DNA from: Macrostomum lignano
Taxonomy: Eukaryota
DNA: 64,000 bases
Assembly (NCBI GenBank): GCA_002269645.1
Contig: NIVC01000419.1
Location: forward strand, 62,001 to 126,000
Reading direction: 5' to 3'
In this document: piece by piece, positions 9,466 through 47,806 of the stretch
Layout of the letters: the number at the start of each line of letters is the position of its first letter
Numbering within the stretch: the stretch's first letter is position 1
Translations under genes and position numbers: made by a program
Notes under the pieces: model-generated
Database searches by the model: none
Seen by the model: only the letters and a program-made list of their open reading frames with translations
What the model was told of the DNA's origin: nothing

Positions 9466-9915
9466 ACCGAACTGAGAGCCTGTGTCAGCAGTCCCTTGGG
9501 CAGCTCGCTTTTAAGAACTGGTGCTTTGAAATCCAGGCCTGCGAACTTTGTAGTTTTGAGAAGTCATAATGACTCTACGCTCGTAAAGCCTCAATTCTCG
9601 ATCTCCAACGGTTGCCACCCAGTCCACTGATCGCAAAATACATCTTTTTATGTAAGCAACGCTAAGCACACTCGTAACAAGGTACCAACTGCCGAAATAA
9701 AGAAAGTAGCGCTGAGAGCTATTTTTCCAGTTCGAGTACAGTCGAAAGCTAGCATTGTCTGCATTGAGTACTCATTTTGAGCTTATTTTCCAACTTCTAT
9801 CCTACTAGTAAATGCCAGATGTTCAAACCTTCTGCAAGTGCCGTAGCCTCTATAGTGAATTGATATAAGCTATTCCTCTAGTATCCAGGAGGACGCTGTG
9901 TTGCTTTTTACATCT

Positions 9916-9931
9916 ACTACTACTACTACTG

Positions 9932-10029
<98 letters not shown>
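9916..10029. repeat. (CTA)n microsatellite, about 38 units
   Basis: Direct reading; one CTG interruption. Confidence 0.97.
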
Positions 10030-20741: not shown

Positions 20742-21571
<830 letters not shown>

Positions 21572-21893: not shown

Positions 21894-23322
21894 ATGAGTT
21901 CCAGCTGTGCAAATCATGGATCAGAACTTGACAGTATCGAAATATTAACCATTTTGCTTGAAAAGGTTTTTGATGGCGACATAGTTCAGGCAGAAACTGA
22001 CATCGGCACCTTGTGAGTTTCATTTCTTATATTAGCTAGTACAGGTTGTCGGCCTAATTACTGCTGTCAATATGAACTTTTTACTTTTCCAGGCTCACCG
22101 GCAGCGCTTCCTCATCTGAGCCATCAGATTCTGAGTAAGTTTTTTGCACGAGTCCACCTTATCTGTAGCTTCTTTTGAAGCTGAATTTGTGCAACTAAAT
22201 TTAACTTTTAAAATTATTATTCTTTACTAATGTTGTTGCCCCATTTTTAGTCGATCTTCAGACGGACAAATCGATATTTCAATTCCATCAATGAAAGAAG
22301 TGGCCACCGAGACAGTTGAACCAACAGAACACGAATGCCTGTCACATATTCGACAAGAGCGAGACGGATTGAAGGCTCAATGCTTAGAACTGGAGCAGTG
22401 CATCAATCGAATGCAAGATGAATTGAGGGAACTTGAGGAAGTGAAGCACATCAACGGCTTACTGAAATCCCAGTTGGAGAACAAGGCTTGGAATGTGACC
22501 AACCTGCAGGCTTCAAAGCAAAGCTTGGAAAAACAGTTGAAACAGTCGTCTCAGGAAAATCAGGTACTGAAGTCGCAGCTGGCTGACTTGTCCGCCCAAT
22601 TTGACGAGAGCAGAAAAAATGCTGAGCAAGCTCAAGCCATGGCCGAGAAAACAAATGCTAAACTGGCAGATTTGCAGCAATTGTGCGATGCACTGCAAGA
22701 GGCTCTGAACCACAACAAGACTCAACTGGAAGCCAAGGCAGCCTCTGAGCAGCAGCTGAGGCGAGACATCGAAGACCTCTGCAGGGAAAGAGAAACAGAA
22801 AAGAAGACTCTACTCGAAAGTACTGAAGCCGAAAAAAAGAGAACTACGGACTTAGTTGCACGGCTAAATATGAAACAGGAGGCCTTGCTTCACAAAACTC
22901 AAGCTATGGAAGAGCAGGAAACTGCCAATCAGAGTTTACAGCAGACCGCACAGAAGCTGACAGAGAAAAATCAAATGCTCCAATCTCAGTTGAATGAGGA
23001 ACGGTCGGTTTCTGCCGAAATGAAAAACAGGCTGATTGCGCTATTAAGGAATTTTGAAGCTCAAACTAAATCCCTAGATAATAGTGAAAAGACAATAATG
23101 TTGCTAGAAACCCAGCTTCAAGATAAGGACTCAGCTTTGGCAGAGCTGGAAACTGAGAGTCAAAAGCTTAAGAAAGACTTGACGGAGGAAAAACAATTTT
23201 CAAGTTTTATGCTATTTACATGTGTACTCGTACTTGCTAGCTCTTTATTCGATGTATTCTATCGCAGTTTAGGAAGCTCCAGTCAAGAGACCACAATGGA
23301 GAAGAAAAATCGAGCAACTTAA
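21894..23322 (+). CDS. Coiled-coil family gene U1 (3 exons, about 410 aa, hydrophobic C-terminal segment)
   Basis: Exons 21894-22012, 22093-22134 and 22251-23322, with GTGAGT/GTAAGT-AG phase-2 introns, in frame. N-terminus MSSSCANHGSEL; C-terminus FMLFTCVLVLASSLFDVFY. Confidence 0.85.
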
Positions 23323-24924
23323 TTCAAGCCAATGTTGACAGTATGGTTAAAAATTACTATGAGCTACAGACTGATCTGAATAAAGTTACACAGGACCTTG
23401 ATCAAGGCTGCTCTTGAGCGACAACTGTATTATACAATCGCCCGTTCTGCATAAAAGACTCAACGAAACACTCAAGAACTTCTTGCAGTAAAGGTGCAAC
23501 AAAGAAAACTTGTATTAAGATAAACTTTGTCATGAAACTATAGGCGCTTAAAATCCGTTAAAATCATGTACAGGTTCTTCCGGCTAGTTTATTCCGGATT
23601 CTTTAAAGATCGACCATTTCGATTTAAAATTCGAAGTTACAAGCGAAGCTGTCTATCTGCGGTTTTTTATGAGGCTTTTCATTAGTATTCACTCCAGAAT
23701 CAGAGTCTGGAAAAGCATTAAAATCCATATACATATACGAGCGTACTTTTGTTAAGAAATAATCAGAGCGAAACGAAAAATGTCGAACAGATTTTAGATT
23801 CTTGAATGGCCAATATAAAGAGCCGCTATGATAAAGTTTTTAAGTGTTAATAAATTGATTTTTTATCATAATGAGGCAGGCTCGCTAGTTTTATAATACT
23901 TATGTATATTCTATTTTAAATCTACGCCAAAAAAGGCCTAACTACGTATTTTTGTTTAAATGATGTATTTGTTTTAACGAATGATTTTATATTTAGGAAA
24001 ATATTTTGTTTAAGTCGATAAAAGAAATTTGTTATTCACAGACCCGCGCACCCATCCTCCCCTAGTAAAACCTATAAATACAAGCGTTTTCGGGAAACTT
24101 TTTCTTTGCCCGCCGTTTCTCCGATTCGGTTAAGAAAGCAAATCGTGTTGGCTCAGTTACTTGGAAAGCATAAAGGAGAGAAAAGCTGTCAGAAGCCAGG
24201 AGAATAAAGAAGAAAAAAGCTGTGAGAAGCCAGTGAAAGGGGAAGTAAGCGGTCGGCTAGTTGGGCAACGCCGTTATCTCTCAGTATCGCCACCGTGTAG
24301 TTTGCAGTTGCTCACTTTGGAGCTTAGTTGCACTTTTTCTTAATAGTATCGAGACTATATAGAGTCCGCGCTTGTTGTATTCACCTTTTGATTTACTCAA
24401 TAGCAAAAAAGATAGCCGCAGGATCTTCTGCTACAGCTGCTTACGAGTACATGTATATGCCAGTCAGTCAGTTTTTTCTCTAAAAATGATAACAATTTCT
24501 TCACGTTGAAAACTTTGCTTGACCTTTGCAAAGCGCATGAATTATTCGAATTTTCAATCCCCTTAGCACTGAGCTATGTCAACTTAATGCGACTTGCATT
24601 GAATCCGAAAAATTTAAATTGTTCCAACACTCTAAATAGTCGATTGCATACAAGCAAGCAACACGCATGCGAGTATACGCGCGTAAATACAATTCATTTT
24701 TAACATATATGAGCCAGAAGATAGAACAATTCGGTGACGATAATAGATAGTATTTTAGCATATAGGATATTCCAAAATACGCGTACAATATAGAATACAT
24801 TATACAATCTAAAATATACGTTACATTATACAACAGTAGCAGCTGCAAGCACAACTTTGGTGTCATTTTAAAGCGGTACATCCGGCCTTCTTTCCAATGA
24901 ATTCAGTCTTGTGTATTTTGGTGA

Positions 24925-27900
24925 TGTAGTAGGGCATTAATTTAGGGGGAGAATTAGTACCGGGAATTAGTGGCAAGCAGATATGCTTTTACGCTACTAT
25001 CAGTAGTTTCAGCCTGGGGTAATTAGAGTAATTAGAAAGTAATTAGAGTGGGGGTAAATCGCTAGTTTCCGGGATTCTTTAGAAGTATAGAGCAGTTTTG
25101 GGGCGTGGAAAAGCTTTTTGGGCACGGGCTTCCTGACTGGTACGTCGAATCCTCGCTGTCCCCGGGGAGGTTTAGATAAGCCAATTGGGTTTGGGGTAGG
25201 CGTACGCTCTGAGGGTCGGGGGTAGGGGGGCACTTCATAAGACCTAAATTTCACAACGCCTAAAGCACATGACTTCACATCACCTAAATTTCATAACGCC
25301 TAAAATCGAAATTGCAGCCTCCTTCACAACGCCTAAATTTCACATCGCCTAAATTTCATAGCGCTTAAAACCGAAAATGCATCCTACTTCATATCGCCTA
25401 AATTTCACAACGCCTAAAAATCTGCATGCTCTTTCATATCACCTAAACTTCATATCGCCTAAATTTCACAACACCTAAAACTGAATGTGAAGGAGAGAAG
25501 CAAAGATTTTAGGCGTTGTGAAATTTAGGTCTTATGAAAGCGTCCCGGGGGTAGGACCCGCTCTCGGCCTGACTGGCGCCGCTTACCCGGCTCGATGTAC
25601 AGTCCTCTTAGTTCCAATTAGGATTTAAGTGTACACATTATTACACTCCCAACCTGGAAACCTTATTTCACTAGTGGCGTAAGAGCCTGTTCAATGGCTG
25701 AGGCGCCAGATTTACTTATTTTAGTTTAGTTTAGGGCGTAGAAAAGCAGACGCGTGCCGCGGGAAGTCTCAGAAATTAGGAATAGGTAAGAGGCGGGGAA
25801 AATATTGAGAAATACGTAAAACTGTTGGAGGTAGTCGATGCCAAAGACAATGCCTAGCTTGTCGCACAAGTAAAGTAACAATAACCATTGCCTGCTGATT
25901 TTCTCTTTTTTTGAAGTAATAAAGTTTTGTTAAATTGATGAGGACGCACTTTTTTTCCAAATCCCGCGCTAGCACATGGGCTCTAAACTTACTAGCCTAC
26001 TGACAGCAGGCTAAGGGCATTTTTATCCTTTTTCTGCGAATTGTCATAGAATCTATACTAGATATAATGTTTGGTCATACTAGTAGTCATAATAACATAG
26101 GCGCAGCTTTTTGGGTCATAAATCATCGCTTTCGAAGCTGGTCTGACAGCCACCTGCGTCTCACTCAGTGTTGAGGCGGACGCCAGATGGTCTGAGAGGA
26201 TGCGGGCAGTAGCTTTTTTCTGACCATTTTGACAGGCCATCAAGATTTATGAGGTCAGAGCCTATTGTTCGTGTTCACTCAAGCGTGTGACAGCTTTGAC
26301 AGCTATGCGTTTTACCCTTAAAAGTACTCGTACTTTGGGATTAGCGATTAGTGATTTCTCTTCATTATCTTCACTTTCTATTTAATAAGAGCTTTCTAAT
26401 GTATATTTTTTCATTAATTTCTGTCAATCCTACGCGAAAAGTCATAAATCAATTTGTTGCGATTTTGATTGATTTATGACCGCACCTGTCATTTTTTACG
26501 ACCCTGTGGGAACTGATAGGATCTCCCGGTCACGTGATTCTGGGTAGCAACAAGCTTAGCCAATCAGAAAATTCGGCGCTCATTTTAACAAAACGGCTCA
26601 GCCAATCAGAATCGACGTGTTCCATTATAACAAACTGCGGTCCAGTTGGCGGCTATTTAAACCGGTGTTTTTGGGCCGCTCGGACCTCAACCGGCTCTCC
26701 CGCGGAGGAACCTTCCCGACATTTCTGGTTCCCGGAGCCCGACCGTCGTTTCTTGATCCCCGGATTGCGACTTCCCCCTCATCATCAGGGACGAGTCCCC
26801 CGTTCATCAGCAGCGAACATCAAAGTTAAGATCATCACCTGCTGGCTATCAGCGAAGATTGTGTCAGCATCATCCCTAGTCTACAGCTGCGAAGCATCAA
26901 GCCGATTCGGTCACTGTGGATTTCCTGGTCTCCGGCTGTTGAGTTTCTGATTGGTTGGGTGAGAGGCTACCTAGACTTGCTTGATTGGGTGATCCCTTAT
27001 CTGTCCCCTGTTTCAGTAGCTGAATTAGGCGCACACTTTTGCTCACTTTGTTCAGTAGTGCTGTTGCTGAGGCAGAAGTCATTCAATAATACTGCTAGTA
27101 GTCTAAACTCCAATTCAATCTGAAGTGTGAAGTGATCTAAGGAGAAGGTTAAATCTAACAGTTATTTTTATCGGTTTTATTTCTTTGTTCGCCGATGGCT
27201 CAGATGAGTAGCTAAGCTAGTAGGCGCCGGTCACAGTGGACCAATGGCAAGGCAGTTCTCAGTCGATCAATCTATCAAATCAGTTAGCGAAGCTGCCAGG
27301 AGTGCAGAATCGGCGCCAGAGATGTACTTTGTGCACTCTAGGTTAGCCAAGCGGCTCGGGGATTGAATCATGCGGTCTCTGAGGTTCGAGTTAGCCTATC
27401 ATCAGCGCTATGAGAGGCTAGTTGGCGCGTCGAAGGCCAAAAGTACAATTCTTCGCATTTAGCAATGTAATAGTACATGTAGCTACCCCATAGCCTCGCC
27501 ACTATAAGAATCCCCTGCACAAGTCCCCTCTGTACCTGCATGGCCAATGCGATCTAGTCCCAGCAGTGTCCCTTATCATCGGCTATGACTTCGAGATAGA
27601 CAGCAAAAAGACACTAGTTGGCAGGTAAGTGCAAAGCCCCTTCTAGTCGGAAGCCCGATTTCGAGAGTCCCGGTGTGGTGAGCCAGGGCGCACGGGCTGG
27701 TGGCAGCGAGTTAGTTGATCTGCGGATTAGCTAATTTCTACTTTCAAAATTCTCCCTGCTCATCTCTCGCTGTCCCTCTCTTAGCTATAGGACCTAGACT
27801 GCTCGCCACACGATCAAGCTACCATGGGGCTGACCATCAGACAGGAGTGGGGGGCCAGGACTCTAATTGATTTATTTCTGAGACCTGAGGCCCGAAGGCT

Positions 27901-28107
27901 TCCCCAGGAGGGGGCCGAAAGGCCGAAACCCATCAAAATATTTGGTTTTCCTGTGTCACTCCTTATCACTAAATTAATAGGAATAGGGAAGCAGGAAGCC
28001 TGGTGGCAGCAAACCTACCAAACCTCAAACAATAGCAAGTAAAATCCACTAAAAATCCTTAGCGAATAGAAAACCAGTAGCCCAAACCGCAAGAAACGCC
28101 CATTCCA
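24925..28107 (+). mobile_element. LTR-like element (expanded solo LTR with nested inserts)
   Basis: Begins TGTAGTAGGGCATT, ends ...ATTCCA, and is flanked by 4-bp TSD GTGA (24921-24924, 28108-28111). The first ~190 bp and last ~130 bp match the 553-bp copy at 55457-56009. Confidence 0.7.
25227..25546. mobile_element. MULE/Mutator-like MITE with internal CCTAAATTTCACAACGCCTAAA repeats
   Basis: TIRs GGG.C.CTTCATAAGACCTAAATTTCACAACGCCTAAA and the reverse complement at 25507-25546. 9-bp TSD GGGGGTAGG (25218-25226, 25547-25555). Superfamily inferred from TSD length and GGG termini. Confidence 0.75.
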
Positions 28108-28461
28108 GTGATTTTATACAAAATTTATGTGTGAAAAACCATCGCAATACCACAAGTGTTCTGTTCTGTCCTCAAAGAAACGAATTGTACGATCGAGTCA
28201 TTCATCATAATCATCAACCTTCAAGGCAGCCTTCTCAACATTGTCTCTATCTGTAGCAACACACTTTTCCCCATCGCTTGAGCATTCCGTCAATCGCACT
28301 AGAGTAGCATTTTCTTAAAAGATCATGGGAGAGAATGCGCCGAACCTTGTCTTCCAAATGATCCCAGTGGTAGACAGTACAACGTCTCACTGCATCTAAC
28401 CCATGAATTGATGTCAAATGGGAATGGATCCCTGCACCCTTATTTCCGATGCTTCAAGGTA

Positions 28462-29429
28462 CTTCGGGTGTGTCATAAGTAATGTCACTGCAGGCCTCTG
28501 TCTAAAATATGTAGGCACATGGACTTGTGGGTAGTGTAGCTGCAAAGTATACTTAGTGAAGCAATAGCAGTGCATTTGAGACGTGCATAGGTTGTTTATG
28601 GCCCAAGCTATCGAAAGAATACGCCAAGCAGATTTAGCAAGTGCAACGCGATGAAAAATCGTCTATGCAGCGAACAAAAATCATCATGAATCTCGACATG
28701 ACGCCTGCACCAAGCAGATCCGCAAGGTGTTTAGCAGCCAGGGCTTGAATGACATCCTAAACTGCCTGGTTGCTGAGGATGAAAGCTGGCTCCACCTGGA
28801 TGGCAAGGGCAGCAAGGCAGATAATCGCTGCTGGTTGGGAGCTGGGGACTTCAGGCCGATGGTGACTAGGAAGTCCATCTCGGACAAGAAGACCATGCTG
28901 CTGGTAGCCTTCACGCCAAACAAACGAGTCTCCATCTGCACAACTCCACCGAACACCAAGGTCGATGGCCAGTACTTTATCGACTTTTTCCGGCACACTG
29001 GGGACCTCTGGTGCACTCTCCGGTCAAATCCATGTCACCTGGACGAGGTTCTGTGGCAAATGGACACCGCACGGCTGCACACCTGAAGGCTGTTTCGAAT
29101 TTTCTGCCTGCACGGCAAGTGAATATGCTCTGACAGTCCCTACAGCCCAGACTTCAACTTTTGCAAGAGATTCCTGTTCAAATGGCTGAAGGCTGACTTT
29201 TCCAAGAAGAGTTTCGCAAACCATGAAGAGGTAAAACAGGCTGCGTTGCACTGGTTATGGCAGTTGGAGGAAAAACACCTGCAGGCTGAGGTGGACAAGC
29301 TGTATGAGCATTGCCAGAGGGTGATTGATATTGGGGACTCTATGCTGTTGAGTGGTACAGTTTTGTTCATCTGCGATTGCAAGTTCGTCTGTTTTCACAT
29401 CAGTGACATTACTTATGACACACCCGAAG
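28462..29429 (+). mobile_element. Internally deleted mariner (Tc1/mariner) transposon
   Basis: Perfect 29-bp TIRs CTTCGGGTGTGTCATAAGTAATGTCACTG with TA on both sides. Transposase motifs LVAEDESW, WQMDTARLHT and YSPDFN are present, with a stop and frameshifts; the third catalytic D is not seen. Confidence 0.92.
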
Positions 29430-30228
29430 TATAAGTATTCCGTGTCTTTGGCCTACTTTAGATTGCACACTCATGAAGATGTACTCCTACTTGTTATGAA
29501 CTTCAACTTTTACTGTAAGACTGTCTGTGACATTGCGATGGTTTTCACACATCAATTTTTTAAAGAAATGACTCAAATACACGCGACTTGATTCATTGGA
29601 AAGAAGAAACGTGCCGCTTTAAAATGACATCAAATTAGTGCTTGCAGCTGCTACTGTTTTTGTTTTGGGATTTAAAGTGTCAGAAATTTCCGGACACCCC
29701 TCGTAAAATATATTGTGACGACTGATCAGGTCAACTTTCGCAGACGTCAGACCGTTTAGAATATCGACCAGACGGTTGCCCTAGGGTAGCAAACCTAATA
29801 CAGTAGCCCATGCCCAGTTTTGCACAGTCTACTGGATTCTACTGTCTCTGTACTTGAGTCTTAGCCCAGTGCAGTACTGCAGCTTTACGGTAAGTACAGT
29901 ATATACACAGAGGAAGAGTTAAAACCGCCGCCACCCTAGATAAAGAATTGGCAGAGCGATTGACTTCAACTCACTATACTGCAATACACTGCAAGGCTGA
30001 CTGAGTTTCGGGTGGCAGTTTTGTCTGTTGCTGACTGTATGTACGAGTACAATCCATACACTATACAGTGGTCCCAGAGTGAGCACCACAAAGCGAAAAC
30101 TCATATACACTAACTACTAATACGCTCTGTGAGTACTTCACACGTAACGTCCCTGTTTCTCTCTCTCCTTGCTTTCTTATCTTTCGTAGTGAAGTTCTTA
30201 AAATTTTCTGAGCGGCATATCGACTAGC

Positions 30229-31784
30229 ATGAGTTCTAGCTGTAACAACAGCGGATCAGAATTATTAGACAGGATTGACTCATTATCCATACAGCTTGTG
30301 AAGGTTTTCTATGGCGATCTAGTTCAGGCAGAACCTGGCATTGGAACCTTGTAAGTTTTATAGCTTACATTAGTTAGTAAGGATTGTGTCGGCCTACTGG
30401 TAATGAGTTCTTTTCTTTATTACTGCTGTCAATACTCGTATGTACGCTCGTAATTTTTATTTTCCAGACCCAGCGGCAGCGCCTCTTCATCTGAGCCATC
30501 GGATTCAGAGTACATGTAGGTTATTTGCATTAGTCAACCTTGTTTAAAGCTCTTTCCGCAACTTCATTTGCGCTCCAATTTTCATTCTTAAATTATAGTT
30601 TTTCACTAACGTTGGCTATTTTCAGGTCTTCTCCATCAACGAAAATCGTTGGATCAACAGAACACGAATGCCTGTCACACATTCGACAAGAGCGAGACGG
30701 ATTGAAGGCTCAATACTTAGGAATGGAGCAGTGCATCAATCGAATGCAAGATGAGTTGAGGGAACTTGAAAAATTAAAACACATCAACGGCTCACTGAAA
30801 TCCATGTTGAAGCGCGAAACTTGGAAAGTGACCAACCTGCAGGATTCAAAGCAAAGCTTGGAAAAACAGTTGAAACAGTCGTCTCAGGAAAATCAGCTAC
30901 TGAAGTCGCAGCTGGCTGACTTGTCAGGACAATGTGATGGGAGCAGAAAAAATGCTGAGGAAGCTCAAGCCATGGCCGAGCAATCAAATGCCAAACTGGC
31001 AGATTCGCAGCACTTCTGCGATGCACTGCAAGAGGCTCTGAACTACAACAGGACTCAACTGGAAGCCAAGGCAGCCTCTGAGCAGCAGCTGAGGCGAGAC
31101 ATCGAAGAAAAGAGTCATATGGTCTTATTTGCACGGCTCAGGGCGCAAGAGGAGGCTCTGCATCAATCTCGTCAGGCCAATAGGTCATTGGAATCAGAGA
31201 TGGATCGCATGACTCAAGCTATGGAAGAACAGGAAACTGCCAAACAGAGTTTACAGGAGACCGTACGGAAGCTGAGAAAGGAAAATCAAATGCTCCAGTC
31301 TCAGTTGCAGACTCTCAATAAATCTAAAACATTTTCTGATCAGAATTTCGAAGAGATGAGGAAAAAAATTAAGAGTGTATTGATTGACTTCGAAAAGCAA
31401 GATGAGGCTCTTCATAATGCAAAGAAGCTGAAAAAATTGCTGGAGACCGATGTCAAGGAAAAGACGTTGGCCCTTGTTGAGCTAAAAAATTCTGAGAAGA
31501 GGACTCAAGCAGAATTAACGGAGGCGCGGTTGGTTGTTGCCAAATTGGAAAACAGGTTCTCTGCTCTATTGAGGGAATTCGAAGCTCAAACTAGATCCCT
31601 AAACCAAAGTAAAGAGTCGACAATATCGTTAACAACCCAACTTAAAGGTAAGGACTCAGTCTTGGCAAAGTGGGAAACTGAGCGTCAAACTCTTCAGGAT
31701 GAGTTGATGCAGAAAAGGCGAACTTTAAGTTTTATGCTATTGATACTATTTATACTAGTCATTTTATGGCTAAGAAAGCCATGA
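30229..31784 (+). CDS. Coiled-coil family gene U2 (3 exons, about 440 aa, tail-anchor-like C-terminus)
   Basis: Exons 30229-30350, 30468-30509 (weak donor GTACAT) and 30626-31784, phase-2 introns, in frame. Ends RRTLSFMLLILFILVILWLRKP*. Confidence 0.85.
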
Positions 31785-32929
31785 GCTGCAGACTGATCTG
31801 AATAAAGTCACGCAGGACCTTGATCAAGGCCGCTCTGGAGCGAAACCTGAATCATACAATCGCCGTTCTACAATTTGCATGAAAGACTCAACAAAAGATT
31901 CTAGAACTTGTTGCAGTGAAGGTGCAGCTATAAGAAAACTTGTATTAGATCTTAATTTATTCATTTGTGACAAGCTGAAGAGACTGTTAGAATAAAATAC
32001 AGTTTAACCAATTAAAACGATGGTGTAAAATCCCTAATCCTATAACTACACTGTATATCTTTGATTTTTCAAATTAGAGTAACAACCACAGCTATGAAAC
32101 CCATTCTGAAAGAAAGAAAAAATGTCATTAAAAGTTCTGAAAAGATTTTGGGTCTGGAATTGTTAATATGAAAAGCCCTTCTTCACAACCGAAGTTTGAA
32201 GCTATTGAAGTTCGATTTTGCCATCACAGATTTACAAGTCTGTGGAAATGTTCCGATTTTCAAGAATTTTCTAAATTTGTACATGTATTCAAAGTACTAT
32301 GACCAATAAAAAATATCTCTATTTTCGGCGCCGCGCGCACTTTGAATGTCATTTTCCTCATTTTATTTAGCCATCACTGTGTAAATTATTTTTTGTCTGA
32401 TTATACCTAACAGCCACTGCGGTTTAACTAATATATATTCTATTCATTTCGGTACACGACAATATAGGTAATTTATGGCTTCTCTGCTACTCGTTACTTA
32501 TTGAAAGGGCTTTGAAGCTACCTTCATAAAGGAGAGCATTGTCGTTTACAGTGCGATACTACGCATAACTTGTTGTCTTGTGGTCTCAAAATGGGATACT
32601 GCTTGCCTAACAAACTCACTCCTTCCAGGATTTTTTACCCCTTTTAGGATGAGCCCGGTTTCAATGATTGTACAATATGGGCGTATTTTAAAATAATGCA
32701 TACTAGTGAATAATTTATGCGATTTCTCAATAAAATATATTCGATTTTGTCTATTTTATTTCGATAATAGATCATTTATTCATGTATATTAAGAATCTCT
32801 CTGATTAATTTATTCAATCAACAATTGAGTCTTCAACAAAAATTGGACAATCTCGCTCTGAAGACGCATCTTGTCTGTTGAGTCGAGTAGAAGATGTTGC
32901 TGACGCTTGCTGCGGGTTTTCGAGTCGTT

Positions 32930-33402: not shown

Positions 33403-35072
33403 GCCATCGGATTCTGAGTAAGTGTGCATGGCGGAGACAATAGAATATTGGTCTGTTTTAGTCCGTTTCAAGCAAAAAATTTCGCCGAAGAAACGTCCCA
33501 ATTATATCCCCAGGGTTTTGCATTAGTCTACCTGGTTTGTAGCTTATTCTGCAGCTGAATTAGCGCAACTATTTTACTCGTAAAGTGATTGTTTTTTAAC
33601 AACGTCGACTCATTCTCAGGCGATCTGAGGAGGAACCAATCGACATTTCAATTCCATCCACAGAAGAAGTGGCCACCGAGACAGTTGGATCAACAGAACA
33701 CGAATGCCTGTCACACATTCGACAAGAGCGAGACGGATTGAAGGCTCAATGCTTAGAAATGGAGCAGTGCAATAGTCTATTGCAAGATGAATTGAGGGAA
33801 CTTGAAAAAGTGAAGCACATCAACGGCTCACTGGAATCCCAGTTGGAGAGCAAAGTTTGGCAAGTGACCAACCTGCAGGCTTCAAAGCAAAACGTGGAAA
33901 AAGCGCTGAACCAATTGACTCAGGAAAATCAGCTACTGAAGTCGCAGCTGGCTGACTTGTCGGCCCAATGTGATGAGAGCAGAAGAAATGCTGAGGAAGC
34001 TCAAGCCGTGGCCGACCAATCTAATATTAAACTGGCACGTTGGCAGCAGTTGTGCGATGAACTGCAAGAGGCACTGAATCGCAGCAAGACTCAACTGGAA
34101 GCCAAGGCAGCCTCTGAGCAGCAGCTGAGGCGATCCATCGAAGACCTCAGTAGGGAAAAAGAAGGAGAAAAGACGACTCTACTCAAAAATAATGAAGCCG
34201 AAAAAAAGAGGAATACGGACTTAGTTGCGCGGCTCAAGGTGCAAGAGGAGGCTCTGCGTCAATTTCGTCAGGCCAAGACGTCGTTAGAGTCAGAATTGGG
34301 TCGTATGACTCAATCTATTGAAGAACTGGAAACTGCCAAACGGAGTTTACAGCAGACCACACGGAAGCTGAGAAAGGAAAATCAAATGCTCCAATCTCAG
34401 TTGCAGATGCTCAATAATTCGAACAAAGTTTCTGAGCAGAAATTCGAAAAGTTGAGTAAAGACCTTGTTCAAAAGACTACTCTGGAGCGACAACTGAATC
34501 ATACAATCGCCGCTCTGCATGAAAGACTCAACCGCCATGCTGAAGAGTCGGACAACAGGCTGAAGGAAGCGAAGCGAATTCAGAATGAGCTATACGGAAA
34601 AGTTTGCGAACATCAGAATCTCAGACAGAAATGCGAGAAGGAACTTGTTGCATTGAAGGTGCAACTGGAACGCAATAAACGTCAGTTGCATATGGCGCAG
34701 AATCGGATGCGACAAGCAGCTGCGTTGCTTTTGGATACAACTGATTCTGGACCTTCTGCTTAAATTTTTAAGCGGGAAAACTTCGAAAACCATGATGTCA
34801 TGAAACATAATAGTGAATCTCTGGCTGAACGCTCAGCGACGCATTCTAGAGAATAGGACCTGAAACTGTTTCAGGTGCAGGATAATCTAGATCCGGCTGT
34901 CCAACTCTTGCTGCTGTCAGATGAACGCTTTCAACAATCGCAAGAAGTGGCAGATGAATTCCATTGTTATTCGGATGACTTGGAAATTGAAATGGATGCA
35001 CTGAAACAGCAGCTGCTTGAAGTCAAACGACGACTTGGTGACGTTGTTGCGACGTTCAAATCGGTGCGTTAA
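33403..35072 (+). pseudogene. Coiled-coil family copy U3 (5'-truncated, internally deleted, premature stops)
   Basis: Only the last 15 nt of exon 2 remain (gccatcggattctga|gtaagt). Exon 3 starts at 33620. A large deletion fuses KVSEQKFE to QKTTLERQL. TAA occurs at 34761-34763 and 35070-35072, where U4 and U6 have Gln codons. Confidence 0.8.
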
Positions 35073-37008
35073 CGACTATATGATGAACTGAACTCTGAAC
35101 TGAGCTAAACAGTTGCATACGTCCTGTTCCTAAAACCATTAAAATGGCACGACTCAACTCATTGGTTTTATGAATCTATTTTGCCATTCTTCGCTCACTG
35201 TGTAACAATCTGTGTAACAGAGATGATAAAATAGATTCATAAAACCAAGATACAAGCTCATTTTCTAATTTTTAGGCACAGAAAATGCACCTAAAATAAA
35301 AAATTAACATGGAATAAATCTTTTTTCTGAACGAAAAGCTCTGTGAATATCAATCAATATAGCTGTAAGAAAGGCACAACATATCAAGAGATAAACATTG
35401 GTCTGCCTCCTATCGAAGGCATTAAAATTTTGTGTTGAAAGTAAGAAAATTTGTCCTTGTTTCCCAAGTTGTCCTTGGGAAAAGCATATGATTCAACAGA
35501 TATTTTCTGTCTGAAATTAATTTTTGTCGATAGCAATCTCATAGCGTTTTCATTTGTAACCAAAATGTCAGCTATTCAAATCACAGAAACAATTTATTCT
35601 TAGAAACGCAGAAACGCTATCAACACTATGCTCTGAAATCCTCAATCCTTTATCGGTCCCTAAAAAATTTCAAAAATTGAAGAGCTGAATCAGTTTTGAA
35701 ACCGATTCTGAAAAATGATAAAAATTTCAAAAGTTCCTAACAGATTTTGTTTATTGAAGCGCCAATGTGAAAATCTCCTTATAACAGCTTCTACAATATT
35801 ATCCACAAGCATGCCCCTTTCGTGGTCAATGACCGCGGTCGGGCACCGCCCGTTTGTGCTCCGTTCCTTGCTCTGTCCACTCTGCTTGCCATGTGTACAA
35901 CACAAGCTTAATTTCTACTCCTCCGTTGCTCGCCGCCTACCCGTCTTTCTGCCCCCGAGCGCACCCAGCCCCCCTCAGTTCTGGATAAAAGGCCTTCTCT
36001 GGTTGTTCTGGCTCGCCTTGTCTGTTTGCGCGTAGTCTTTTTATCCTCTGTGGTCTTTTGTCCTTATTCGTATTTCTACGCTTTTTCCTTAACTCTGTTC
36101 ATCGCTTTTTTACTGTTTTTAATCGTTTTTTACTCCCCTAAGTCTAGAGGGCTTCTTTTGATCGCTTGTGCGCTTCGTTCCCCTCATGTTGGTGTTCGTG
36201 TCTCTTCTTTTGTGCTCCGACCATGGCGTTGATAGCTTCGCTATTGCAAAATGTTCCAAATCACAAGAATTTTTCTAAATGTTCATCCAATCTAGGACAC
36301 TTAAAAAAACATTTTCTAGATTTTCGGTCAGTTAAAAATATCAACCTACACTTAAAATGTTATTTCACTCATTTTTGTCACTTTTCACTGTTAAATATTT
36401 CAAACAGTAGTTTTAAACAGCAGTAGAGGCTTTATTGAAAAAATACTGCTTACATTTTGCTGATTTTTGTACACAACTATATCTATACAGGTATCGAATT
36501 TATTGAGGGCTTGTGAAATGACCTTCATAAATTAGAGCACTGTCAACTGCAATGACCCAAAATAACCCAAAGAACTGAGGTCTTAGAATTAGAATGAAGC
36601 AGCTTCTTATAGCTAGACAACTGGTAATGCAGCAGAAAGCCATCGGAACACTGTGTGCTTCACAAATTCACCCGACCCCCTCCAATTCCTCCAGTTCCCA
36701 CGCGTGACCCATCTGATGATCAGACTTTTAGAAACAGATCACGGGCGTTAGGAGACTGGAAGCCAATTAGACAGAGGAAGACATGACTCAATCACATTGG
36801 AGTTCGGAACGTGACCGACCTTTTTAGGACTATATTTTAGCTGAGGACTCTGCGCTCAAAAATCCTCAGACGTCCGATTTTTATCGAGAAGCGGGGCCCG
36901 TTTTTCTCCCACGTTTGATTTTGATCCACAGCTCCTGACTCCGATTTGAGTCCAGTCCACTTCAGGAACCGTATCAGCTACGACATCGATTCTATTGAGA
37001 ACAGTAGC

Positions 37009-37410
37009 AGCACCGCCGTCAGCGAGTCATCGGTCCTGCTGAGGACAGTACGAGCTACCAGCATCGTCGTCAGCGAGTCATCGGTCCTGCTGAGGACAGT
37101 ACGAGCTACCAGCATCGTCGTCAGCGAGTCATCGGTCCTGCTGAGGACAGTACGAGCTACCAGCATCGTCGTCAGCGAGTCATCGGTCCTGCTGAGGACA
37201 GTACGAGCTACCAGCATCGTCGTCAGCGAGTCATTGGTCCTGCTGAGGACAGTACGAGCTACCAGCATCGCCGTCAGCGAGTCATCGGTCCTGCTGAGGA
37301 CAGTACGAGCTACCAGCATCGTCGTCAGCGAGTCATTGGTCCTGCTGAGGACAGTACGAGCTACCAGCATCGCCGTCAGCGAGTCATCGGTCCTGCTGAG
37401 GACAGTACCA
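37009..37410. repeat. 51-bp minisatellite, about 7.9 copies
   Basis: Unit AGCATCGTCGTCAGCGAGTCATCGGTCCTGCTGAGGACAGTACGAGCTACC; no spacers. Confidence 0.95.
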
Positions 37411-38478
37411 GCATCGCGGTCAAGGAATCAGACTTAACCTTCTAAGACTGAGACTCAAGACATCAAGCTTAACCCCCTTGGTGATTTTGTTCTGCTACGA
37501 TTGTCAGTTGCGTGGCTAGCCGCCAAGTGCTGAGTTCTCAGTTCTTTAGAATCTCTTGTTAACAAGAGTCCCATCTTCAGCTATAGGCCAGTCCGTGGTC
37601 GGCTCAAACAGCCCTGGTCATCAGTGTGGATTCCAGCCTCGTTTCAGTGGGAAATGTCAATGAGCCTGCTCAGAAGGGGGTGGTTTCAGACTCCGTGTTT
37701 TCTTACGGCGTCCCGCAAAGGCACCTTAGCAGCGTCATGCGTCCCGCAAACCTAGATGTGTTAGAGCCTTGCCTTCACGCCATGTTGCGCCATAACTGCT
37801 TTCATGTTCTTTCATCCGCTTTCGCAAACTCATAAGCAGATACCACTGAGTCACTTAAGCTCATCTTGAAATTCAGGTGGCAATGTAGTTTTGCCGCCCT
37901 TTTTACCCAAGCTTTCCTCAATGACCGATAGAAAATCTGAGATAAATCTGTCTCTCCGATAGTCGTTAGTAATCGAAATCCACTTTCGCGGATGTTTGGC
38001 CGTTTAGAATATCGATTTAGCATAGGTGGATGGGACGGTTGCCCAAGTGTAGCAACCTAATACAGTAGCCCCAGTCTTGAACAGTCTGGAACTGCGTGTG
38101 ATTCTACTGGCACTGTACTTGAGTATCAGCCCAGTGCAGTATTGCAGCTTTAAGGTAGAGAGATATTAAAAAGTACATTTAGCAAGATCCAAGAACAGCC
38201 ACCCAAGATAGAGAATTTGCAAAGCGATTGACTTCAGCTCACTACACAACAATACACTCAATGGCGCACTGAGTCTGGGGTAGCGGTTTCAACTGTTGTC
38301 AAGCGTATGTACAATGCATACGATACAGTAATGACAGAGTGTACACCACAAACAGAAAACTCACACAAGAAATACTTTAAACCCAACGTTCCTGTGTCTC
38401 TTATGGATTTCTTCTGATCTCGTAGAAAACTTCTGTGCATTTGGTTCTTCAAACTTTCTAAGCGGCACACCGAGCAGC

Positions 38479-39862
38479 ATGAGTTCCAGTTGTAACAACT
38501 GTGGATCAGAATTATTAGACAGGATTGACTCATTATCCATTCAGCTTGTCAAGATTTTCGATGGCGAGAATGCACCAGCAGAACCTGGCATCGGCAGCAC
38601 CTTGTGAGTTTTACTGGTTATACTAGTTAATAAGGGTGGTGTCAGCGTACTGTTAATGAAAAGTTTCTGTAATTATAGTTGTTATTACGAGTTTGTACTT
38701 TTTTACTTTTTCAGGCCCAGCGCAAAGGCTTACTCACCTGAGTCATTTGAGTCAGAGTAAGTTTTTGCATTAGTCAAACCAGTTTTAGACTCGTTTTGGA
38801 ACTGACATACTGCAAAAAGTTTAGTCTAAAACTATTGTTTTTGCCAACTTTAACTCAATTTTATTCTTTAGACCATATGCGGACGAACCAATCAATATTT
38901 TAAATCCCTCAATGAAAGAAGTGGCCACCGAGACACTTGAACCAACAGAACACGAATGCCTGTCACACATTCGACAAGAGCGAGACGGATTGAAGGCTCA
39001 ATGCTTAGAATTGGAGCAGTGCATCAATCGAATGCAAGATGAATTGAGGGAACTTGAAAAATTGAAACACACTAACGGCTCACTGAAATCCATGTTGAAG
39101 CGCGAAACTTGGAAAGTGACCACCCTGCAGGCTTCAAAGCAAAACGTGGAAAAAGCGCTGAACCAATTGACTCAGGAAAATCAGCTACTGAAGTCGCAGC
39201 TGGCTGACTTGTCGGCCCAATTTAAAGAAAGCAGAAAAAATGCTGAGGAAGCTCAAGCCATGACCGAGCAATCAAATGCTAAACTGGCAGATTCTCAGCA
39301 TTTGTGCGACGCACTGCAAGAGGCACTGAATCACAGCAAGACTCAACTGGAAGCCAAGGCAGCCTCTGAGCAGCAGCGGAGGCGAGAGTTCGAAGGCCTC
39401 AGCAGTGAAAGAGAAAGAGAAAAGACTCTGCTCAAAAGTAATCAAGCCCTAAACAAGAGGAATATGGACTTAGTTGCACGGCTTAAGGAGCAAGAGGAGA
39501 CTCTGCATCAAAGTCGTCAAGCCAAAACATCTTTAGAGTCAGAGTTAGATTTTAAGACTCTAGCAATGGAAGAACTGGAAACTGCCAAGCAGAGTTTACA
39601 AGAGACCGCACAGAAACTGACGGAGGAAAAGCAAATGCTTCAGTCTCAGTTGGAGACTCTCAGTGACGTGAATAAAGTTTTTGAGCGGAAATTAGAAGAG
39701 TTGAGGAAAAAATTCAACAGTTTATTGACAGAATTTGAAAAGCAAGATGAGGCTCTGAACAATGCAAAGAAAATGAAGGATTCGCTGGAGACCGAAGTCA
39801 AGGAGAAGACGTTGGCCCTTATTGAGCAAAAAAATCGGAGAAGAGAATTCAAGCAGAATTAA
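38479..39862 (+). CDS. Coiled-coil family gene U4, N-terminal ORF
   Basis: Exons 38479-38603, 38715-38756 and 38872-39862, phase-2 introns. A 1-nt deletion near 39835 relative to U2 and U6 shifts the frame to TAA at 39860-39862. Confidence 0.75.
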
Positions 39863-40890
39863 TGCAGGCCCGGTGGGTTACTGGTGCATTGGAAAACAGG
39901 TTCGCTGCGCTACGGACGGAATTCGAAGTTCAAACAAGATCTCTAAACGAAAGTAAAGAGTCTATACTGTTGCTAAAAACCCAGCTTAAAGATAAGGACT
40001 CAGTTTTGGCAGAGCTGGAAGTTAGGCGTCAAAATCTTCACAGAGACATGACGCAGGAACGCTTAGAAAAGCAAAAGTTGAGTTTTATGCATCGGTGGCT
40101 CCAGTCAAGTTATAATAGCAGTTATAATAGCGAAGAAGCAGTTCAGCAGCTTCAAGCCAAGAATGAAAATATGGCTCAGAAAAACCACGAGCTACAGGCT
40201 GATCTGAATAAAGCTACAGAGACCCTTACTCAAAAGACTGCTCTGGAGCGACAACTGAATTACACAATCGCCGCTCTGCATGAAAGACTCAACCGCCATG
40301 CTGAAGAGTCGGACAACAGGCTGAAGGAAGCGAAGCGAATTCAGAATGAGCTATACGGAAAAGTTTGCCAACATCAGAATCTTAGACAGAAATGCGAGAA
40401 GGAACTTGTTGCATTGAAGGTGCAACTGGAACGCAATAAACGTCAGTTGCTTTTGACTCACGATCGGATGCGACGAGCAGCTGCGTTGCTTTTGGATACA
40501 ACTGATTCTGGACCTTCTGCTCAGCATTTAAGGCCGGAAAGTACAAGAAAGAAAGTCGAAAACAATGATGTCATGAGACATGATAGTGAATTATCGGCTG
40601 AGCATTTGGCGACGCATTCTAGAAAACAGGAGGTGAAAACAAAACTGTTTCAGGTGCAGAATAATCTAGAACAGGCAGTCCAACTCTTGCTGCTGTCGGC
40701 TGAACGCCTTCAACAATCGCAGGAAGTGGCAGATGAATTCCATCATTGTTCAAATTACTTGGAAACAGAAATCGATGCACTGAAACAGCAGTTGTTTGAA
40801 GTCAAACGACGACTTAGAAACGTTGAGACGTTTAAATCGGTGCGTCAACAACTCTGTGATGAACTGAACTCATCGACTGGCATTAGGTAA
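39862..40890 (+). CDS. Coiled-coil family gene U4, C-terminal ORF (342 aa) starting at overlapping TAATG
   Basis: Intact ORF collinear with the C-half of U6. ATG 39862-39864 overlaps the upstream TAA. Contains a 12-bp tandem duplication AGTTATAATAGC (40108-40131). Independent translation is unproven. Confidence 0.55.
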   Translation: MQARWVTGALENRFAALRTEFEVQTRSLNESKESILLLKTQLKDKDSVLAELEVRRQNLHRDMTQERLEKQKLSFMHRWLQSSYNSSYNSEEAVQQLQAKNENMAQKNHELQADLNKATETLTQKTALERQLNYTIAALHERLNRHAEESDNRLKEAKRIQNELYGKVCQHQNLRQKCEKELVALKVQLERNKRQLLLTHDRMRRAAALLLDTTDSGPSAQHLRPESTRKKVENNDVMRHDSELSAEHLATHSRKQEVKTKLFQVQNNLEQAVQLLLLSAERLQQSQEVADEFHHCSNYLETEIDALKQQLFEVKRRLRNVETFKSVRQQLCDELNSSTGIR

Positions 40891-42372: not shown

Positions 42373-43701
42373 ATGAGTTCCAGCTGTGCGAATCATAAAT
42401 CAGATTTATTAAACAGGATTGAGTCATTGACCATTCAGCTTGTAAAGGTTTTTGATGGCGAGAGAGCGCCGGCAAAATCTGGCATCGGCACCTTGTGAGT
42501 TTTACTCGTTGTACTAGTCAGTACGCGAAGAGTTCCATCAGCCGTATCATCCGTAAATGGAGTTTTTTTGTAACTAATGCTGTTAATGCATTAATTAACT
42601 TTCAGACCCAGCGACAGGGCTTCCTCATCTGAGCAACCGGACTCTAAGTACATTTTTTGCATTGGTCTACCCCTTTTTGCAACTTAATTAATGCAATTAA
42701 ATTTACTCTTCAAATTTTTAATTTTAAACAAACGTTGGCCCATTTTTAGACGATCGTTGAACGAACCAATTGACATTTCAATTCCACCAACGAAAGAAGT
42801 GGCCACCGAGACAGTTGGATCAACAGAACACGAATGCCTGTCACACATTCGACAAGAGCGAGACGGATTGAAGGCTCAATGCTTAGAACTGGAGCAGTGC
42901 ATCAATCGAATGCAAGACGAATTGAGGGAACTTGAAAAAGTGAAGCACACCAACGGCTCACTGGAATCCCAGTTGGAGAACAAGGCTTGGCAAGTGACCA
43001 ACCTGCAGGCTTCAAAGCAAAGCTTGGAAAAACAGTTGAAACAGTCGTCTCAGGAAAATCAGCTACTGAAGTCGCAGCTGGCTGACTTGTGCGCACAATG
43101 TAACGAAAGCAGAAGAAAAGCTGAGGAAGCTCAAGCCATGACCGAACAATCAATTGCTAAACTGGCAGATTTGCAGCAATTGTGCGATGCACAGCAAGAG
43201 GCTCTGAACCACAACAAGACTCAACTGGAAGCCAAGGCAGCCTCTGAGCAGCAGCTGAGGCGAGACATCGAAGAAAAGAGTCATATGGTCTTATTTGCAC
43301 GGCTCAGGGCGCAAGAGGAGGCTCTGCATCAATCTCGTGAGGCCAATAGGTCATTAGAATCAGAGACGAATCGTATGACTCAAGCTATGGAAAAACAGGA
43401 AACTGCCAAGCAGAGTTTACAGCAGACCACACAGAAGCTGAGACAGGAAAATCAAATGCTCCAATCTCAGTTGCAGGAGGCCCAGTCGGTCGCTGATGAA
43501 ATGGGAAACAGATTCACGGTGCTGTCGACGAAATTTCAAGCTCAAACTAGACCTCTAAACCAAAGCGAAGAGTCGATAATATTGCAAGAAACCCAGATTA
43601 AAGATAAGGATTCGGTTTCGGCAGATATTGAATCTGGGCCTCAAAATGTTGAGAAAGATTTGACAAAAGAAAAGGGAAGGTCAAGTTGTATTCCATCGTA
43701 A
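42373..43701 (+). CDS. Coiled-coil family gene U5 (3 exons, about 371 aa, truncated, no hydrophobic tail)
   Basis: Exons 42373-42494, 42606-42647 (donor GTACAT) and 42750-43701, phase-2 introns, in frame. A degraded remnant of the C-terminal coding sequence follows the stop. Confidence 0.8.
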
Positions 43702-44972
43702 TTTGAAAGTTCGAGTCAAGTGATCGATCTGGATAGTGAAGAATATTCAGCAACTTATTTCAAGCCAGTGCTGAACTTGTGACAAAGAAAAGCCATGAGC
43801 TATAGGCTAAGCTGTATAAAGTAGTACCACTGGAGTGACAACTGAATTATACAATCACCGTTCTGCATGAAAGACTCAACGAAGTACTCAACTCAATAAC
43901 TTGTTGCAGTGAAGGTGCAACTAAGAAAACTTGTTTTTTGAATAAAATTTGTTGATATCTGGCTTAAAATCAACATATCAATACTTTAATCCTGTTCCAT
44001 TTTATCTGGCTGTTGCATTCCTGTTTCTTTAATGACTGTTTCGATTGAGAAGTCGAAGATGCACTGTGTAACTGCGGTTCTTTATGATGCTTTTCATGAG
44101 TATTTTTCTTCGGAACCAGAATCTGAAGCAAAAGGGAAAACATAAAAGTCTACAGAATATTTTTTTATTGTAAACAAATTTGTTGGAAATTATCTTCGCA
44201 ATCTCTTATTCTAATATTTTCTTAGATTTTTAGATTTCTTAGATTCTTATTTCTAGCCAAGGCTTCAAATAGCCATTTGCCCGAAACAAATTGGTTGCTA
44301 GAACACAGAAACTCAATATCAGGACTAGCTATAGTGCGAAATTCTTAAGGGGGTTTAAAATATGGTCGGGGGAAGGTTCCCACTACAGAACTGTAAGTTC
44401 TGTGGTTCCCATATATCTTGTATAGCAACCTAATATTGTGGCCAGCTTGATGGGTCTTTTCTATGCTCAAGGTGATTTATTGAAAGCTTACTCTCAGTCG
44501 CTTCACTAGCTGTCTAACTTAAATGTCTAACTTAATTTTACAGTGACAATGCAAATTGTTTTAGCCATAGACATTTTAGCGCGCGTGTCAAGCAATGACT
44601 GCTGAGTTAACAGCTTCAGCCGCCTTTCACTCGAGTCGCAGATGGTGCCAGCGGTCTGCTAGGAGGTCTTAAAAGCCCTAAAACATTTGCTGCGTTTTCC
44701 ACCCCTTTGAATAACAGAATGAATAAATAAAAACTCCGTAACTCCAGTTTGTCACGATGCACTTTAATGGGTGGTCTGCACGAGCCGACCCGGCCATGCG
44801 ACCTCCGGGTCCACAAGTTCAAACCAGTCTGATCTAAGTAGACAGTGTGAACTCCTGGAGCTAAGTGGGAGCATGAAGCTAGCCTAACTTTCTTCTGGCG
44901 TCCTGCCAGGCTTTCCACTCGGTTGGTGTTCTGGCGTACATGTACATCCGTCCCCTCTTTAGAAAGTTTGAC

Positions 44973-45284
44973 CAGGGGCGTCGCCATGGATTTTATGGGG
45001 GGGGGGACAAAGCAATGAATTGTACACATACATGTACATGACTAAATTTCTACTATGTACATTTTTTTGAGAACCGGTGTTGTCAGCGCTCATTTTGGCA
45101 TCGCAGGCACTCATTTTAGCACCGTAGGTTCAATATTTTAGCGCCCTGAAACAAAATTATTGCTTTACACAGAGAAGAGCATTATCACCTTCCCCATAGC
45201 CTTCACTGGGGGGGGGGACACATGTCCTTGCTGCCAACAACAATGGGTGGTTGGGCCTTTATGGTCAAACTCAGGGGCGTCGCC
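44973..45284. mobile_element. hAT-like MITE whose right end is inverted
   Basis: Left: AGTTTGAC|CAGGGGCGTCGCC (44965-44985). The right TIR plus TSD appears reverse-complemented as GTCAAACT-CAGGGGCGTCGCC (45264-45284). Confidence 0.75.
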
Positions 45285-45552
45285 AAGGCCCAACCACCCA
45301 TTGTTGTTGGTCAATCAAACGTTTTAAGACTCACATGCGGCTTGGCAGGAAAGCGTCCGACCGGCTTCTCAGTCACCGATTTTGGCGTCAGAAAAGGATT
45401 TCGTTTGCTGCACCTGCAAAAATTTCGTATTTCTGCGTTCATTTTGCAGATTTTTTCCCTGTGCCCTCTGCGACACAAAGCTTCCAACCTGCGGCTTGTT
45501 GGAACATTGACCGAATGCAGTGAATAGAATTTTTCGATACTCCTAACAACAC

Positions 45553-45914: not shown

Positions 45915-45945
<31 letters not shown>

Positions 45946-47682: not shown

Positions 47683-47710
47683 GTAGTAGTAGAAGTAGTA
47701 GTAGTAGTAA

Positions 47711-47806
<96 letters not shown>

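Follow-up and report, generated by a model that had tools for sequence, protein, structure and literature searches.

Hydrophobic C-termini at one site in two truncated copies of a tandem coiled-coil gene of Macrostomum lignano

The golgins giantin, golgin-84 and CASP are long coiled-coil rods with one C-terminal transmembrane domain. In a 64-kb window of Macrostomum lignano DNA (the whole stretch analyzed here; positions refer to it and features lie on its plus strand unless stated otherwise), we found six tandem copies (U1-U6) of a two-exon coiled-coil gene, two of which, U1 and U2, end in a hydrophobic segment at the same place. Like tail-anchored golgins, the two predicted products would have a long coiled coil without an N-terminal signal and only one hydrophobic stretch, placed at the very C-terminus, but no homology was detected, their tails are not conserved, and they are far shorter (396-426 amino acids (aa)). 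The comparison with golgins made in an earlier, sequence-only reading of this DNA could not be extended to homology, as no Pfam family was above threshold for U1, U2 or U6 and no golgin was returned by the HMMER search. On the basis of the results below, the two tails are probably incidental by-products in sibling copies of one truncated gene, which were broken in different ways within an unstable linker.

Other described systems concern newly arisen C-termini. Tails translated from non-coding or frameshifted sequence are typically hydrophobic and undergo BAG6 triage, leading to degradation or membrane targeting (Kesner et al., 10.1101/2022.07.20.500724; PMC10364623). The tails of U1 and U2 are similar in that out-of-frame or filler DNA is read as a C-terminus with U/T-rich codons and that degradation or insertion is predicted, whereas they differ in being carried by duplicated truncated paralogues instead of resulting from readthrough or long non-coding RNAs, in the origin of one of them from amplified hydrophobic codons, and in being observed here only at the level of DNA. 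T-rich DNA is a ready source of coding sequence for transmembrane segments (Vakirlis et al. 2020, PMC7005711), and in yeast, de novo proteins that carry such a segment at the C-terminus use GET/SND for insertion (PMC11384008). The new sequence in the window, with 47-50% T, likewise gives a transmembrane-like C-terminal segment; however, the yeast cases are whole new intergenic open reading frames (ORFs), whereas the 47-bp insertion and the 9-bp repeat of the present array belong to an old flatworm gene. New C-termini also arise often (PMC4494051, 2015). In that study, as here, a stop or frame change gives an existing protein a different or longer C-terminus, but the route described there is stop-codon loss into the 3' untranslated region, whereas in the present array frameshift, slippage and a nonsense change occurred in a decaying coding sequence and the protein was shortened.

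The sequence statements previously made about the hydrophobic ends of U1 and U2 were all borne out. U1 reads AGTTTTATGCTATT from 23203 (AGT), encoding S-FMLFTCVLVLASSLFDVFY (23206-23262), followed by the 19 residues RSLGSSSQETTMEKKNRAT and a TAA stop (23263-23322). The same 14-mer, AGTTTTATGCTATT, is present in U2 from 31728; its hydrophobic segment LSFMLLILFILVILWL occupies 31725-31772 and is followed by RKP and a TGA stop at 31773-31784. U5 stops at the homologous place without a hydrophobic segment (SCIPS*, TAA at 43699-43701), again as described before. U4 (KQKLSFMHRWL, with S at 40081) and U6 (KQKLNLIHSRL, from approximately 49914; the site LNLIHSRL lies at approximately 49911-49934) do read on through the site, for about 268 residues and not the 290 or so that had been estimated. 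At the ORF level, the array encodes a long form (U6), a short tail-less form (U5) and short forms with a hydrophobic end (U1 and U2), in agreement with the sequence-only reading; the membrane anchoring that it attached to the last of these is a prediction only. It also held that the two tails are new, copy-specific and placed at the same position, and our comparison agrees, the tails being mutually unrelated in sequence. Their description as AT-rich inserts was correct for U1, which has a true 47-bp insert, and not for U2, in which a 9-bp tandem repeat is combined with a net deletion. The 14-mer seen earlier in both copies is partly ancestral: CTATTG of U2 is the short-type CTATCG after a CpG-to-TpG change, which accounts for the apparent sharing.

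The three short copies acquired their ends by different events. In U1, a T-rich, frameshifting insertion of 47 bp (23212-23258) supplies most of FMLFTCVLVLASSLFDVFY. The insertion is flanked by CTAT microhomology, within which its exact placement is ambiguous, and it contains a microduplication, GTACTC-GTACTT, encoding V-L-V-L. When the 47 bp were removed in silico, SFMLSQFRKLQS...QANVDSMVKNYYELQTDLNKVTQDLDQGCS* was restored, which is homologous to U4. The short-type ancestral sequence is retained in U1 after the insert (CTATCGCAGTTTAGGAAGCTCCAGTCAAG) and in U5 (CCATCGTAATTTGAAAGTTCGAGTCAAG), where the end results from a nonsense change of CAG to TAA; this TAA matches the CAG codon of U1 at 23265-23267. 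In U2, the core of LSFMLLILFILVILWL is a 9-bp tandem repeat (31731-31766) with the units TTTATGCTA, TTGATACTA, TTTATACTA and (GTCATTTTA), encoding FML-LIL-FIL-VIL. Tandem Repeats Finder (TRF) called 31731-31757 with period 9, 3.0 copies and 83% matches, while the fourth unit, GTCATTTTA, was read by eye (5/9 matches) and lies outside this call. The repeat begins on the ancestral 9-mer TTTATGCTA (F-M-L) and is joined to a net deletion of approximately 55 bp, which throws the remainder out of frame. The 22-bp filler of U2 was also considered as a diverged remnant of the 77 bp that it replaced, and this was rejected for lack of similarity. No donor copy of the U1 47 bp or of the U2 filler was found in the window (blastn-short), where only chance matches of up to 17 nt occurred; a transposon or copied origin of the tails was rejected on these matches. 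The U1 insert contains several palindromes (CATG, GTAC twice, CTAG, AGCT, TCGA, ACATGT and GCTAGC), the excess of which is marginal (six tetramers, p = 0.03 by shuffling; hexamers, p = 0.10). They might hint at hairpin-mediated or templated repair, a signal that is not robust, and the insert was not accepted as a hairpin or excision footprint on such statistics.

Changes in length are not confined to the copies with tails. U4 has an exact 12-bp tandem duplication (AGTTATAATAGC twice) at 40108-40131, giving SYNSSYNS, and the same linker has an 18-21-bp deletion in U6 and a 9-bp in-frame insertion in the short type, so that every copy shows indel differences within approximately 40 bp of the tail site. 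The shared site is an indel-prone, hypervariable linker at the edge of the constrained region. The coincidence of site between U1 and U2 is explained by such a linker in combination with descent from a single truncated lineage.

Evidence for this lineage came from self-comparison of the window and a six-way alignment of the units. U1, U2 and U5 share a 9-bp deletion just before the site (U6 49890-49898), a 4-bp insertion after it, a 97-bp deletion (U6 50109-50205) that takes out RHAEESDNRLKEA...RQKCE, and a 209-bp deletion (U6 50247-50455) together with further losses up to the 3' flank. A 2-bp deletion is common to U1 and U2, and the same stretch is itself deleted in U5. The three copies also have the same sequence following the break. 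Such shared deletions show that U1, U2 and U5 are descendants of one ancestor that was already without the C-terminal module. What is left of this module is a decayed remnant in each copy. In U1 it extends over 23259-23530, out of frame, with the 2-bp deletion and with the 97-bp and 209-bp junctions at 23464/23465 and approximately 23505, respectively, and it houses the current 19-aa tail and stop. The remnant of U2 (31765-31950) has the same 2-, 97- and 209-bp deletions as U1, with a junction at 31892/31893, and in that of U5 (43702-43952) the ancestral frame is interrupted by several stops, with the shared junction at approximately 43880. The 97-bp deletion hits the core of the sole motif common to the U family and the neighboring large coiled-coil gene (44% identity over 62 residues). 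This 62-aa motif, TIAxLxxRLxRHAEE..., was observed at the C-terminus of that downstream gene and in U3, U4 and U6, and its core is gone in the short copies.

A homologous exon 1 (ATG, MSSSC...) was identified in five of the six units, with the ATG at 21894 (U1), 30229 (U2), 38479 (U4), 42373 (U5) and 48314 (U6). Its length is 119, 122 or 125 nt, which are equal modulo 3, and it ends at a GTRAGT donor (GTGAGT or GTAAGT); an intron of approximately 240-275 bp and a pyrimidine-rich acceptor (TTTTCAG or TTTTTAG) then precede the large exon 2. The spliced ORFs have 396 aa in U1, 426 in U2, 371 in U4, 357 in U5 and 714 in U6. The start at MKEV that had been implied earlier was mistaken, the true start codon in exon 1 (MSSSC...) having been missed, and the loss of MKEV in U2 and U5 is immaterial for this reason. 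In U1, exon 1 (21894-22012, MSSSCANHGSE...), recognized by homology to the other first exons, ends in TT before the donor GTGAGT, and exon 2 (22251-23322, to the stop) starts with T after the acceptor TTTTTAG, in frame with exon 1; its indels relative to U6 are 42, 210 and 9 bp, each a multiple of three. U2 has exon 1 at 30229-30350 and the exon 2 coding sequence at 30626-31784, with deletions of 27, 15, 60 and 9 bp relative to U6, all in frame. In U5, the corresponding segments are 42373-42494 and 42750-43701, the latter ending in ...SSCIPS*.

We then compared the indels by region. In the coding part of the short copies up to the site, all eight distinct indels were multiples of three (3, 3, 42, 210, 9, 27, 15 and 60 bp), versus 3/14 in the intron and 3/11 downstream of the site (6/25 vs 8/8, Fisher p = 2e-4). 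No stops were present over 357-426 codons despite approximately 15% divergence; were half of each copy's divergence from U6 neutral, this would have a probability of about 1% per copy. The ratio of nonsynonymous to synonymous rates (dN/dS) was 0.56-0.73 between short copies, compared with 0.42 between U6 and U4; it was not decisive as a means of separating long from short copies, all pairs falling between 0.42 and 0.77. The N-terminal 340-410 codons of the short copies, with no stops, with indels in frame and with exon 1 and splice sites intact, lack the hallmarks of a pseudogene and, judged by these features, look like real, fast-evolving coding sequence. Such hallmarks are present 3' of the site, where no frame stays open for long behind the tails of U1 and U2, so that the short copies are truncated genes with a decayed 3' remnant. 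On the basis of the in-frame indels and the absence of stops, the short forms are plausible as proteins. It should be noted that gene conversion between units occurs and could mimic maintenance of the ORFs, although it is unable to account for the in-frame deletions specific to the short type.

A related observation came from contig NIVC01001245.1, which is 98.8% identical over window positions 44721-53280. Its copy of U6 (L002 3050-5460, corresponding to window 48314-50720) is intact, with 20 aa changes and a dN/dS of 0.45, and 19 of the substitutions are clustered (window 50340-50429), this segment matching U4 at 92.7% versus U6 at 82.9%. The cluster indicates gene conversion between array members.

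The hydrophobicity of the new ends was measured on the Kyte-Doolittle scale. The maximal means were 2.03 over 19 residues in U1 and 2.91 over 17 residues in U2, and did not exceed 1.05 in the rest of the proteins. Random read-through into the non-coding DNA of the window reached a 19-residue mean of at least 2.0 in only about 1.1% of trials, and the two tails are thus not typical read-through. The new sequence has a T content of 47% in U1 and 50% in U2, versus 28.7% in the non-coding DNA of the window, where only 2.5-4.7% of windows are equally T-rich, and in the U2 repeat T occupies the second position in 12 of the 12 codons. With about 50% T, runs of Phe, Leu, Ile and Val are to be expected: about 13% of tails simulated at the base composition of U1 and U2 reached 2.0, as did 27-32% of those that stayed open long enough. 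The hydrophobicity of both tails follows largely from their T-richness.

As candidate tail anchors, the two ends are of unequal quality. On the Kyte-Doolittle scale, the C-terminal segments are the sole ones above 1.1 in U1 and U2, and they lie within the 30-40 or so terminal residues, being followed by 19 residues in U1 and by three (RKP) in U2. By Hessa-type sums, the U2 16-mer scored -5.6 kcal/mol, a strong value in a segment that is short, whereas the U1 19-mer, which contains an Asp, scored +1.8 and its first 15 residues -1.7. The prediction of a tail anchor from these values is strong for U2 and marginal for U1, and the U2 tail, if translated, could credibly serve as a tail anchor or as a signal for degradation.

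The array is a tandem family of a two-exon coiled-coil gene that evolves fast and is specific to Macrostomum. In one ancestral copy, a 2-bp frameshift and the 97-bp, 209-bp and further deletions removed the conserved C-terminal module. Duplication of this truncated ancestor then produced U1, U2 and U5, with a frame conserved as far as the variable linker (...KQ.LSFM...) and unconstrained past it. Each short copy later broke in the linker, U5 by the nonsense change, U1 by the 47-bp filler and U2 by slippage of the 9-mer with a net deletion. The hydrophobic tails of U1 and U2 are probably young, incidental C-termini and not selected anchors. If translated, the U2 tail (16 very hydrophobic residues followed by Arg-Lys) would be captured post-translationally by SGTA, BAG6 and TRC40/GET3, the captured product being either inserted into a membrane or passed to the proteasome; the weaker, Asp-containing segment of U1 would more likely be a degradation signal or have no effect. 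Several points weigh against incidental origin. A transmembrane-like tail in two of three short copies is improbable under a naive rate of about 1-2% each, so that selection for tail hydrophobicity is possible and chance alone is uncomfortable. All seven differences between the U2 repeat units avoid second codon positions ((2/3)^7 = 0.06, by our own count), which hints weakly at constraint. That two of three siblings gained sequence rich in T, in both cases on the coding strand, is a modest coincidence for which incidental origin does not fully account.

These points have to be set against what the other explanations would require. The short copies, or all of the array but U6, could be untranscribed or dying pseudogenes whose tails are never made, which we regard as unlikely, though deserving serious consideration. 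The GenBank annotation of this assembly (Mlig_3_7) is transcriptome-derived and lists neighboring genes, but none of the U family, both for this contig and for the 98.8%-identical one; this absence is a weak sign of low or no expression because the pipeline also removed transcripts overlapping repeats (PMC5730564). The frameshift in U4, the lack of exon 1 in U3, the high dN/dS of the short copies (0.56-0.73) and their plainly decayed 3' parts fit such a view, as would the mimicking of intact ORFs by gene conversion, but U1, U2 and U5 have kept exon 1, ATG, donor and acceptor, all eight coding indels are in frame, 357-426 codons are free of stops at about 15% divergence, and the dN/dS is below 1 and near the 0.42 of the long pair. 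A more far-reaching explanation is adaptive and convergent: membrane tethering of the truncated rod would have been selected twice, and U1 and U2 may co-assemble with the long forms. Tails in two of three short copies versus about 1% of random read-throughs, sole hydrophobic segments placed 3-19 residues from the C-terminus and followed by basic residues, apparently maintained N-terminal ORFs, repeat units of U2 that differ at first and third codon positions only, and the use of GET/SND by yeast de novo proteins with C-terminal transmembrane domains (PMC11384008) all speak for it. We nevertheless consider it improbable, since hydrophobicity is expected from T-rich composition, every copy has an indel hot spot at the site, the U1 segment is marginal (Asp; +1.8 kcal/mol for the 19-mer), the annotation of this assembly lists no U-family member, there is just one sequence of each tail, and the sibling U5 simply has a stop. 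Still less credence is given to the specific proposal that U2, and perhaps U1, is an expressed, newborn tail-anchored coiled-coil protein with an anchor made in situ, by slippage in U2 and by frameshifting filler in U1; if true, it would provide a datable, natural birth of an anchor, by which a rod that had been soluble became a membrane tether or began to act on the long forms as a dominant-negative partner.

Two further explanations concern the tail sequences themselves. A single hydrophobic insertion in the common ancestor of U1 and U2, of which the present tails would be diverged descendants, could account for the 14-mer AGTTTTATGCTATT common to both and for the resemblance of the following nine bases (CTATTTACA in U1 vs CTATTGATA and CTATTTATA in U2). 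However, on the question of one origin or two that had been raised earlier, sequence comparison came out against it: local (Smith-Waterman) alignment of the U1 insert with the U2 filler was no better than shuffles (p 0.2-0.45), with no significant similarity further on, whereas the flanks of the tails are 75-84% identical. Moreover, the ancestral CTATCGCAG is still present behind the U1 insert, CTATTG of U2 aligns to this ancestral copy and not to the insert, and local 9-bp slippage explains the U2 tail, which makes one origin very improbable. The last explanation, that the extra sequence is spliced out as a short intron or is an assembly artefact and the tails are missing from the mature protein, is scarcely credible. 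The U1 insert does end in a pyrimidine-rich, acceptor-like ...TTCTATCGCAG, and Mlig_3_7 is a long-read assembly in which the U4 frameshift adjoins an A7 run. On the other hand, the candidate donors (GTTTTA, GTGTAC, GTACTC and GTACTT) are far from the GTGAGT/GTAAGT of the family, the intron would measure 38-64 nt versus a species average of 1.1-1.4 kb (PMC5730564) and approximately 240-275 bp in the family, and splicing would yield only another short end, since all downstream frames close. A 47-bp insertion and a 27-bp repeat are also unlike homopolymer-type errors, and the upstream frame runs straight into the hydrophobic codons. The intron reading of the U1 insert was rejected on its poor donors and on the nearby stop that any splice would meet.

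Were the tails functional, a stepwise gain of an anchor by a soluble coiled-coil protein could be followed at this locus, where U5, the sibling without an anchor, can be compared with the long parents, U4 and U6, side by side in a species in which transgenesis is possible. With incidental tails, as we prefer, it is a clean example of a known process, in which truncated duplicates gain arbitrary new C-termini, and T-rich filler or amplified hydrophobic codons give such ends the look of a transmembrane anchor. A caution for annotation follows: tail anchors seen at the ORF level in young paralogues should not be taken as targeting signals without expression and conservation.

The remaining units differ in their state of preservation. 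U6 is the intact long type (48314-50720; exon 1 48314-48438, exon 2 48701-50720). U4, also of the long type, extends over 38479-40890 (exon 1 38479-38603, exon 2 38872-40890, SFMH at 40081-40092); its ORF is broken into two parts (38912-39862 and 39862-40890) by a 1-bp deletion at approximately 39834 that adjoins the A7 run (CAAAAAAATCGG vs CAAAAAAATTCGG in U6) and limits the product to 371 aa, and the paralogous model P0001 is in frame at the same point. The deletion is either a real inactivation or a homopolymer-adjacent error of long reads. U3 consists of exon 2 only (33620-34763), with a 495-bp in-frame deletion that takes out the tail site and a stop earlier than that of U6 (…DSGPSA*). 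No exon 1 was found for U3 (33516-35350), which is 5'-truncated with most of the intron gone too.

Relatives of the family appear to be few. An exhaustive HMMER search of 1.84 billion representatives gave no matches other than P0001, the downstream gene of the window itself and a fragment of 101 aa (E = 6e-4), and a Pfam scan of the U family gave only sub-threshold coiled-coil noise; judged by these searches, the family behaves as lineage-specific (Macrostomum). P0001 (M. lignano A0A1I8G9K9), which is 77% identical to U6, bears the UniRef name CCDC150, a name unconfirmed by Pfam (no hit), and, the 101-aa fragment apart, the HMMER search matched no relative from outside Macrostomum. As a gene model, P0001 joins one unit of the U3 kind to one of the U4 kind. 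A 51-bp tandem repeat at 36946-37437, between U3 and U4, is a coding exon (…IAVSESSVLLRTVPASR) in this older ML2 model, and the repeat-borne fusion probably reflects an error of annotation or else transcription that reads through. The protein collection contains no U-family protein from this assembly, though neighboring genes are present, and exact look-up of nine predicted products gave 0/9. With U6 as the query for annotated proteins that might bear the tails, P0001 was the sole match. A profile built from the U1, U2 and U5 alignment matched nothing, P0001 included, and was treated as uninformative. Over the intact U6 copy on NIVC01001245.1 there is no gene call, though neighboring genes are annotated.

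The large coiled-coil gene downstream of the array (52244-59762) is represented here by two annotated genes (320 aa, and 479 aa corresponding to P0002) and on the paralogous contig by a 302-aa gene and one 1062-aa protein (P0004). P0002 is encoded exactly at 58323-59762 (annotated contig NIVC01001246.1, GCA_002269645.1, Mlig_3_7; window +30213). Two overlapping ORFs, 56906-58309 and 58275-59762, are in different frames, so a frameshift or an unrecognized intron is suspected in the window copy. Elsewhere the window contains microsatellites and sparse ORFs, as expected for eukaryotic DNA. A (GTA)n trinucleotide microsatellite of approximately 0.83 kb (20742-21571) lies directly 5' of U1 and contains a minus-strand 349-codon poly-Tyr ORF; shorter (GTA)n copies were observed 5' of U6 (47681-47813, plus strand) and at 9914-10029 (minus strand). 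Downstream of U6 there is a large, imperfect inverted repeat with short tandem units (51458-52000 vs 52068-51524, 86.9% identity). In the 7-kb gap between U1 and U2, an ORF at 28727-29086 (plus strand) resembles, by eye, a degraded mariner-type transposase (…WQMDTARLHT; no Pfam hit). Finally, an ORF with a clear domain of CIMIP3 (ciliary microtubule inner protein 3; E = 3e-16) is located at the left end of the window, at 1516-2256 on the minus strand.

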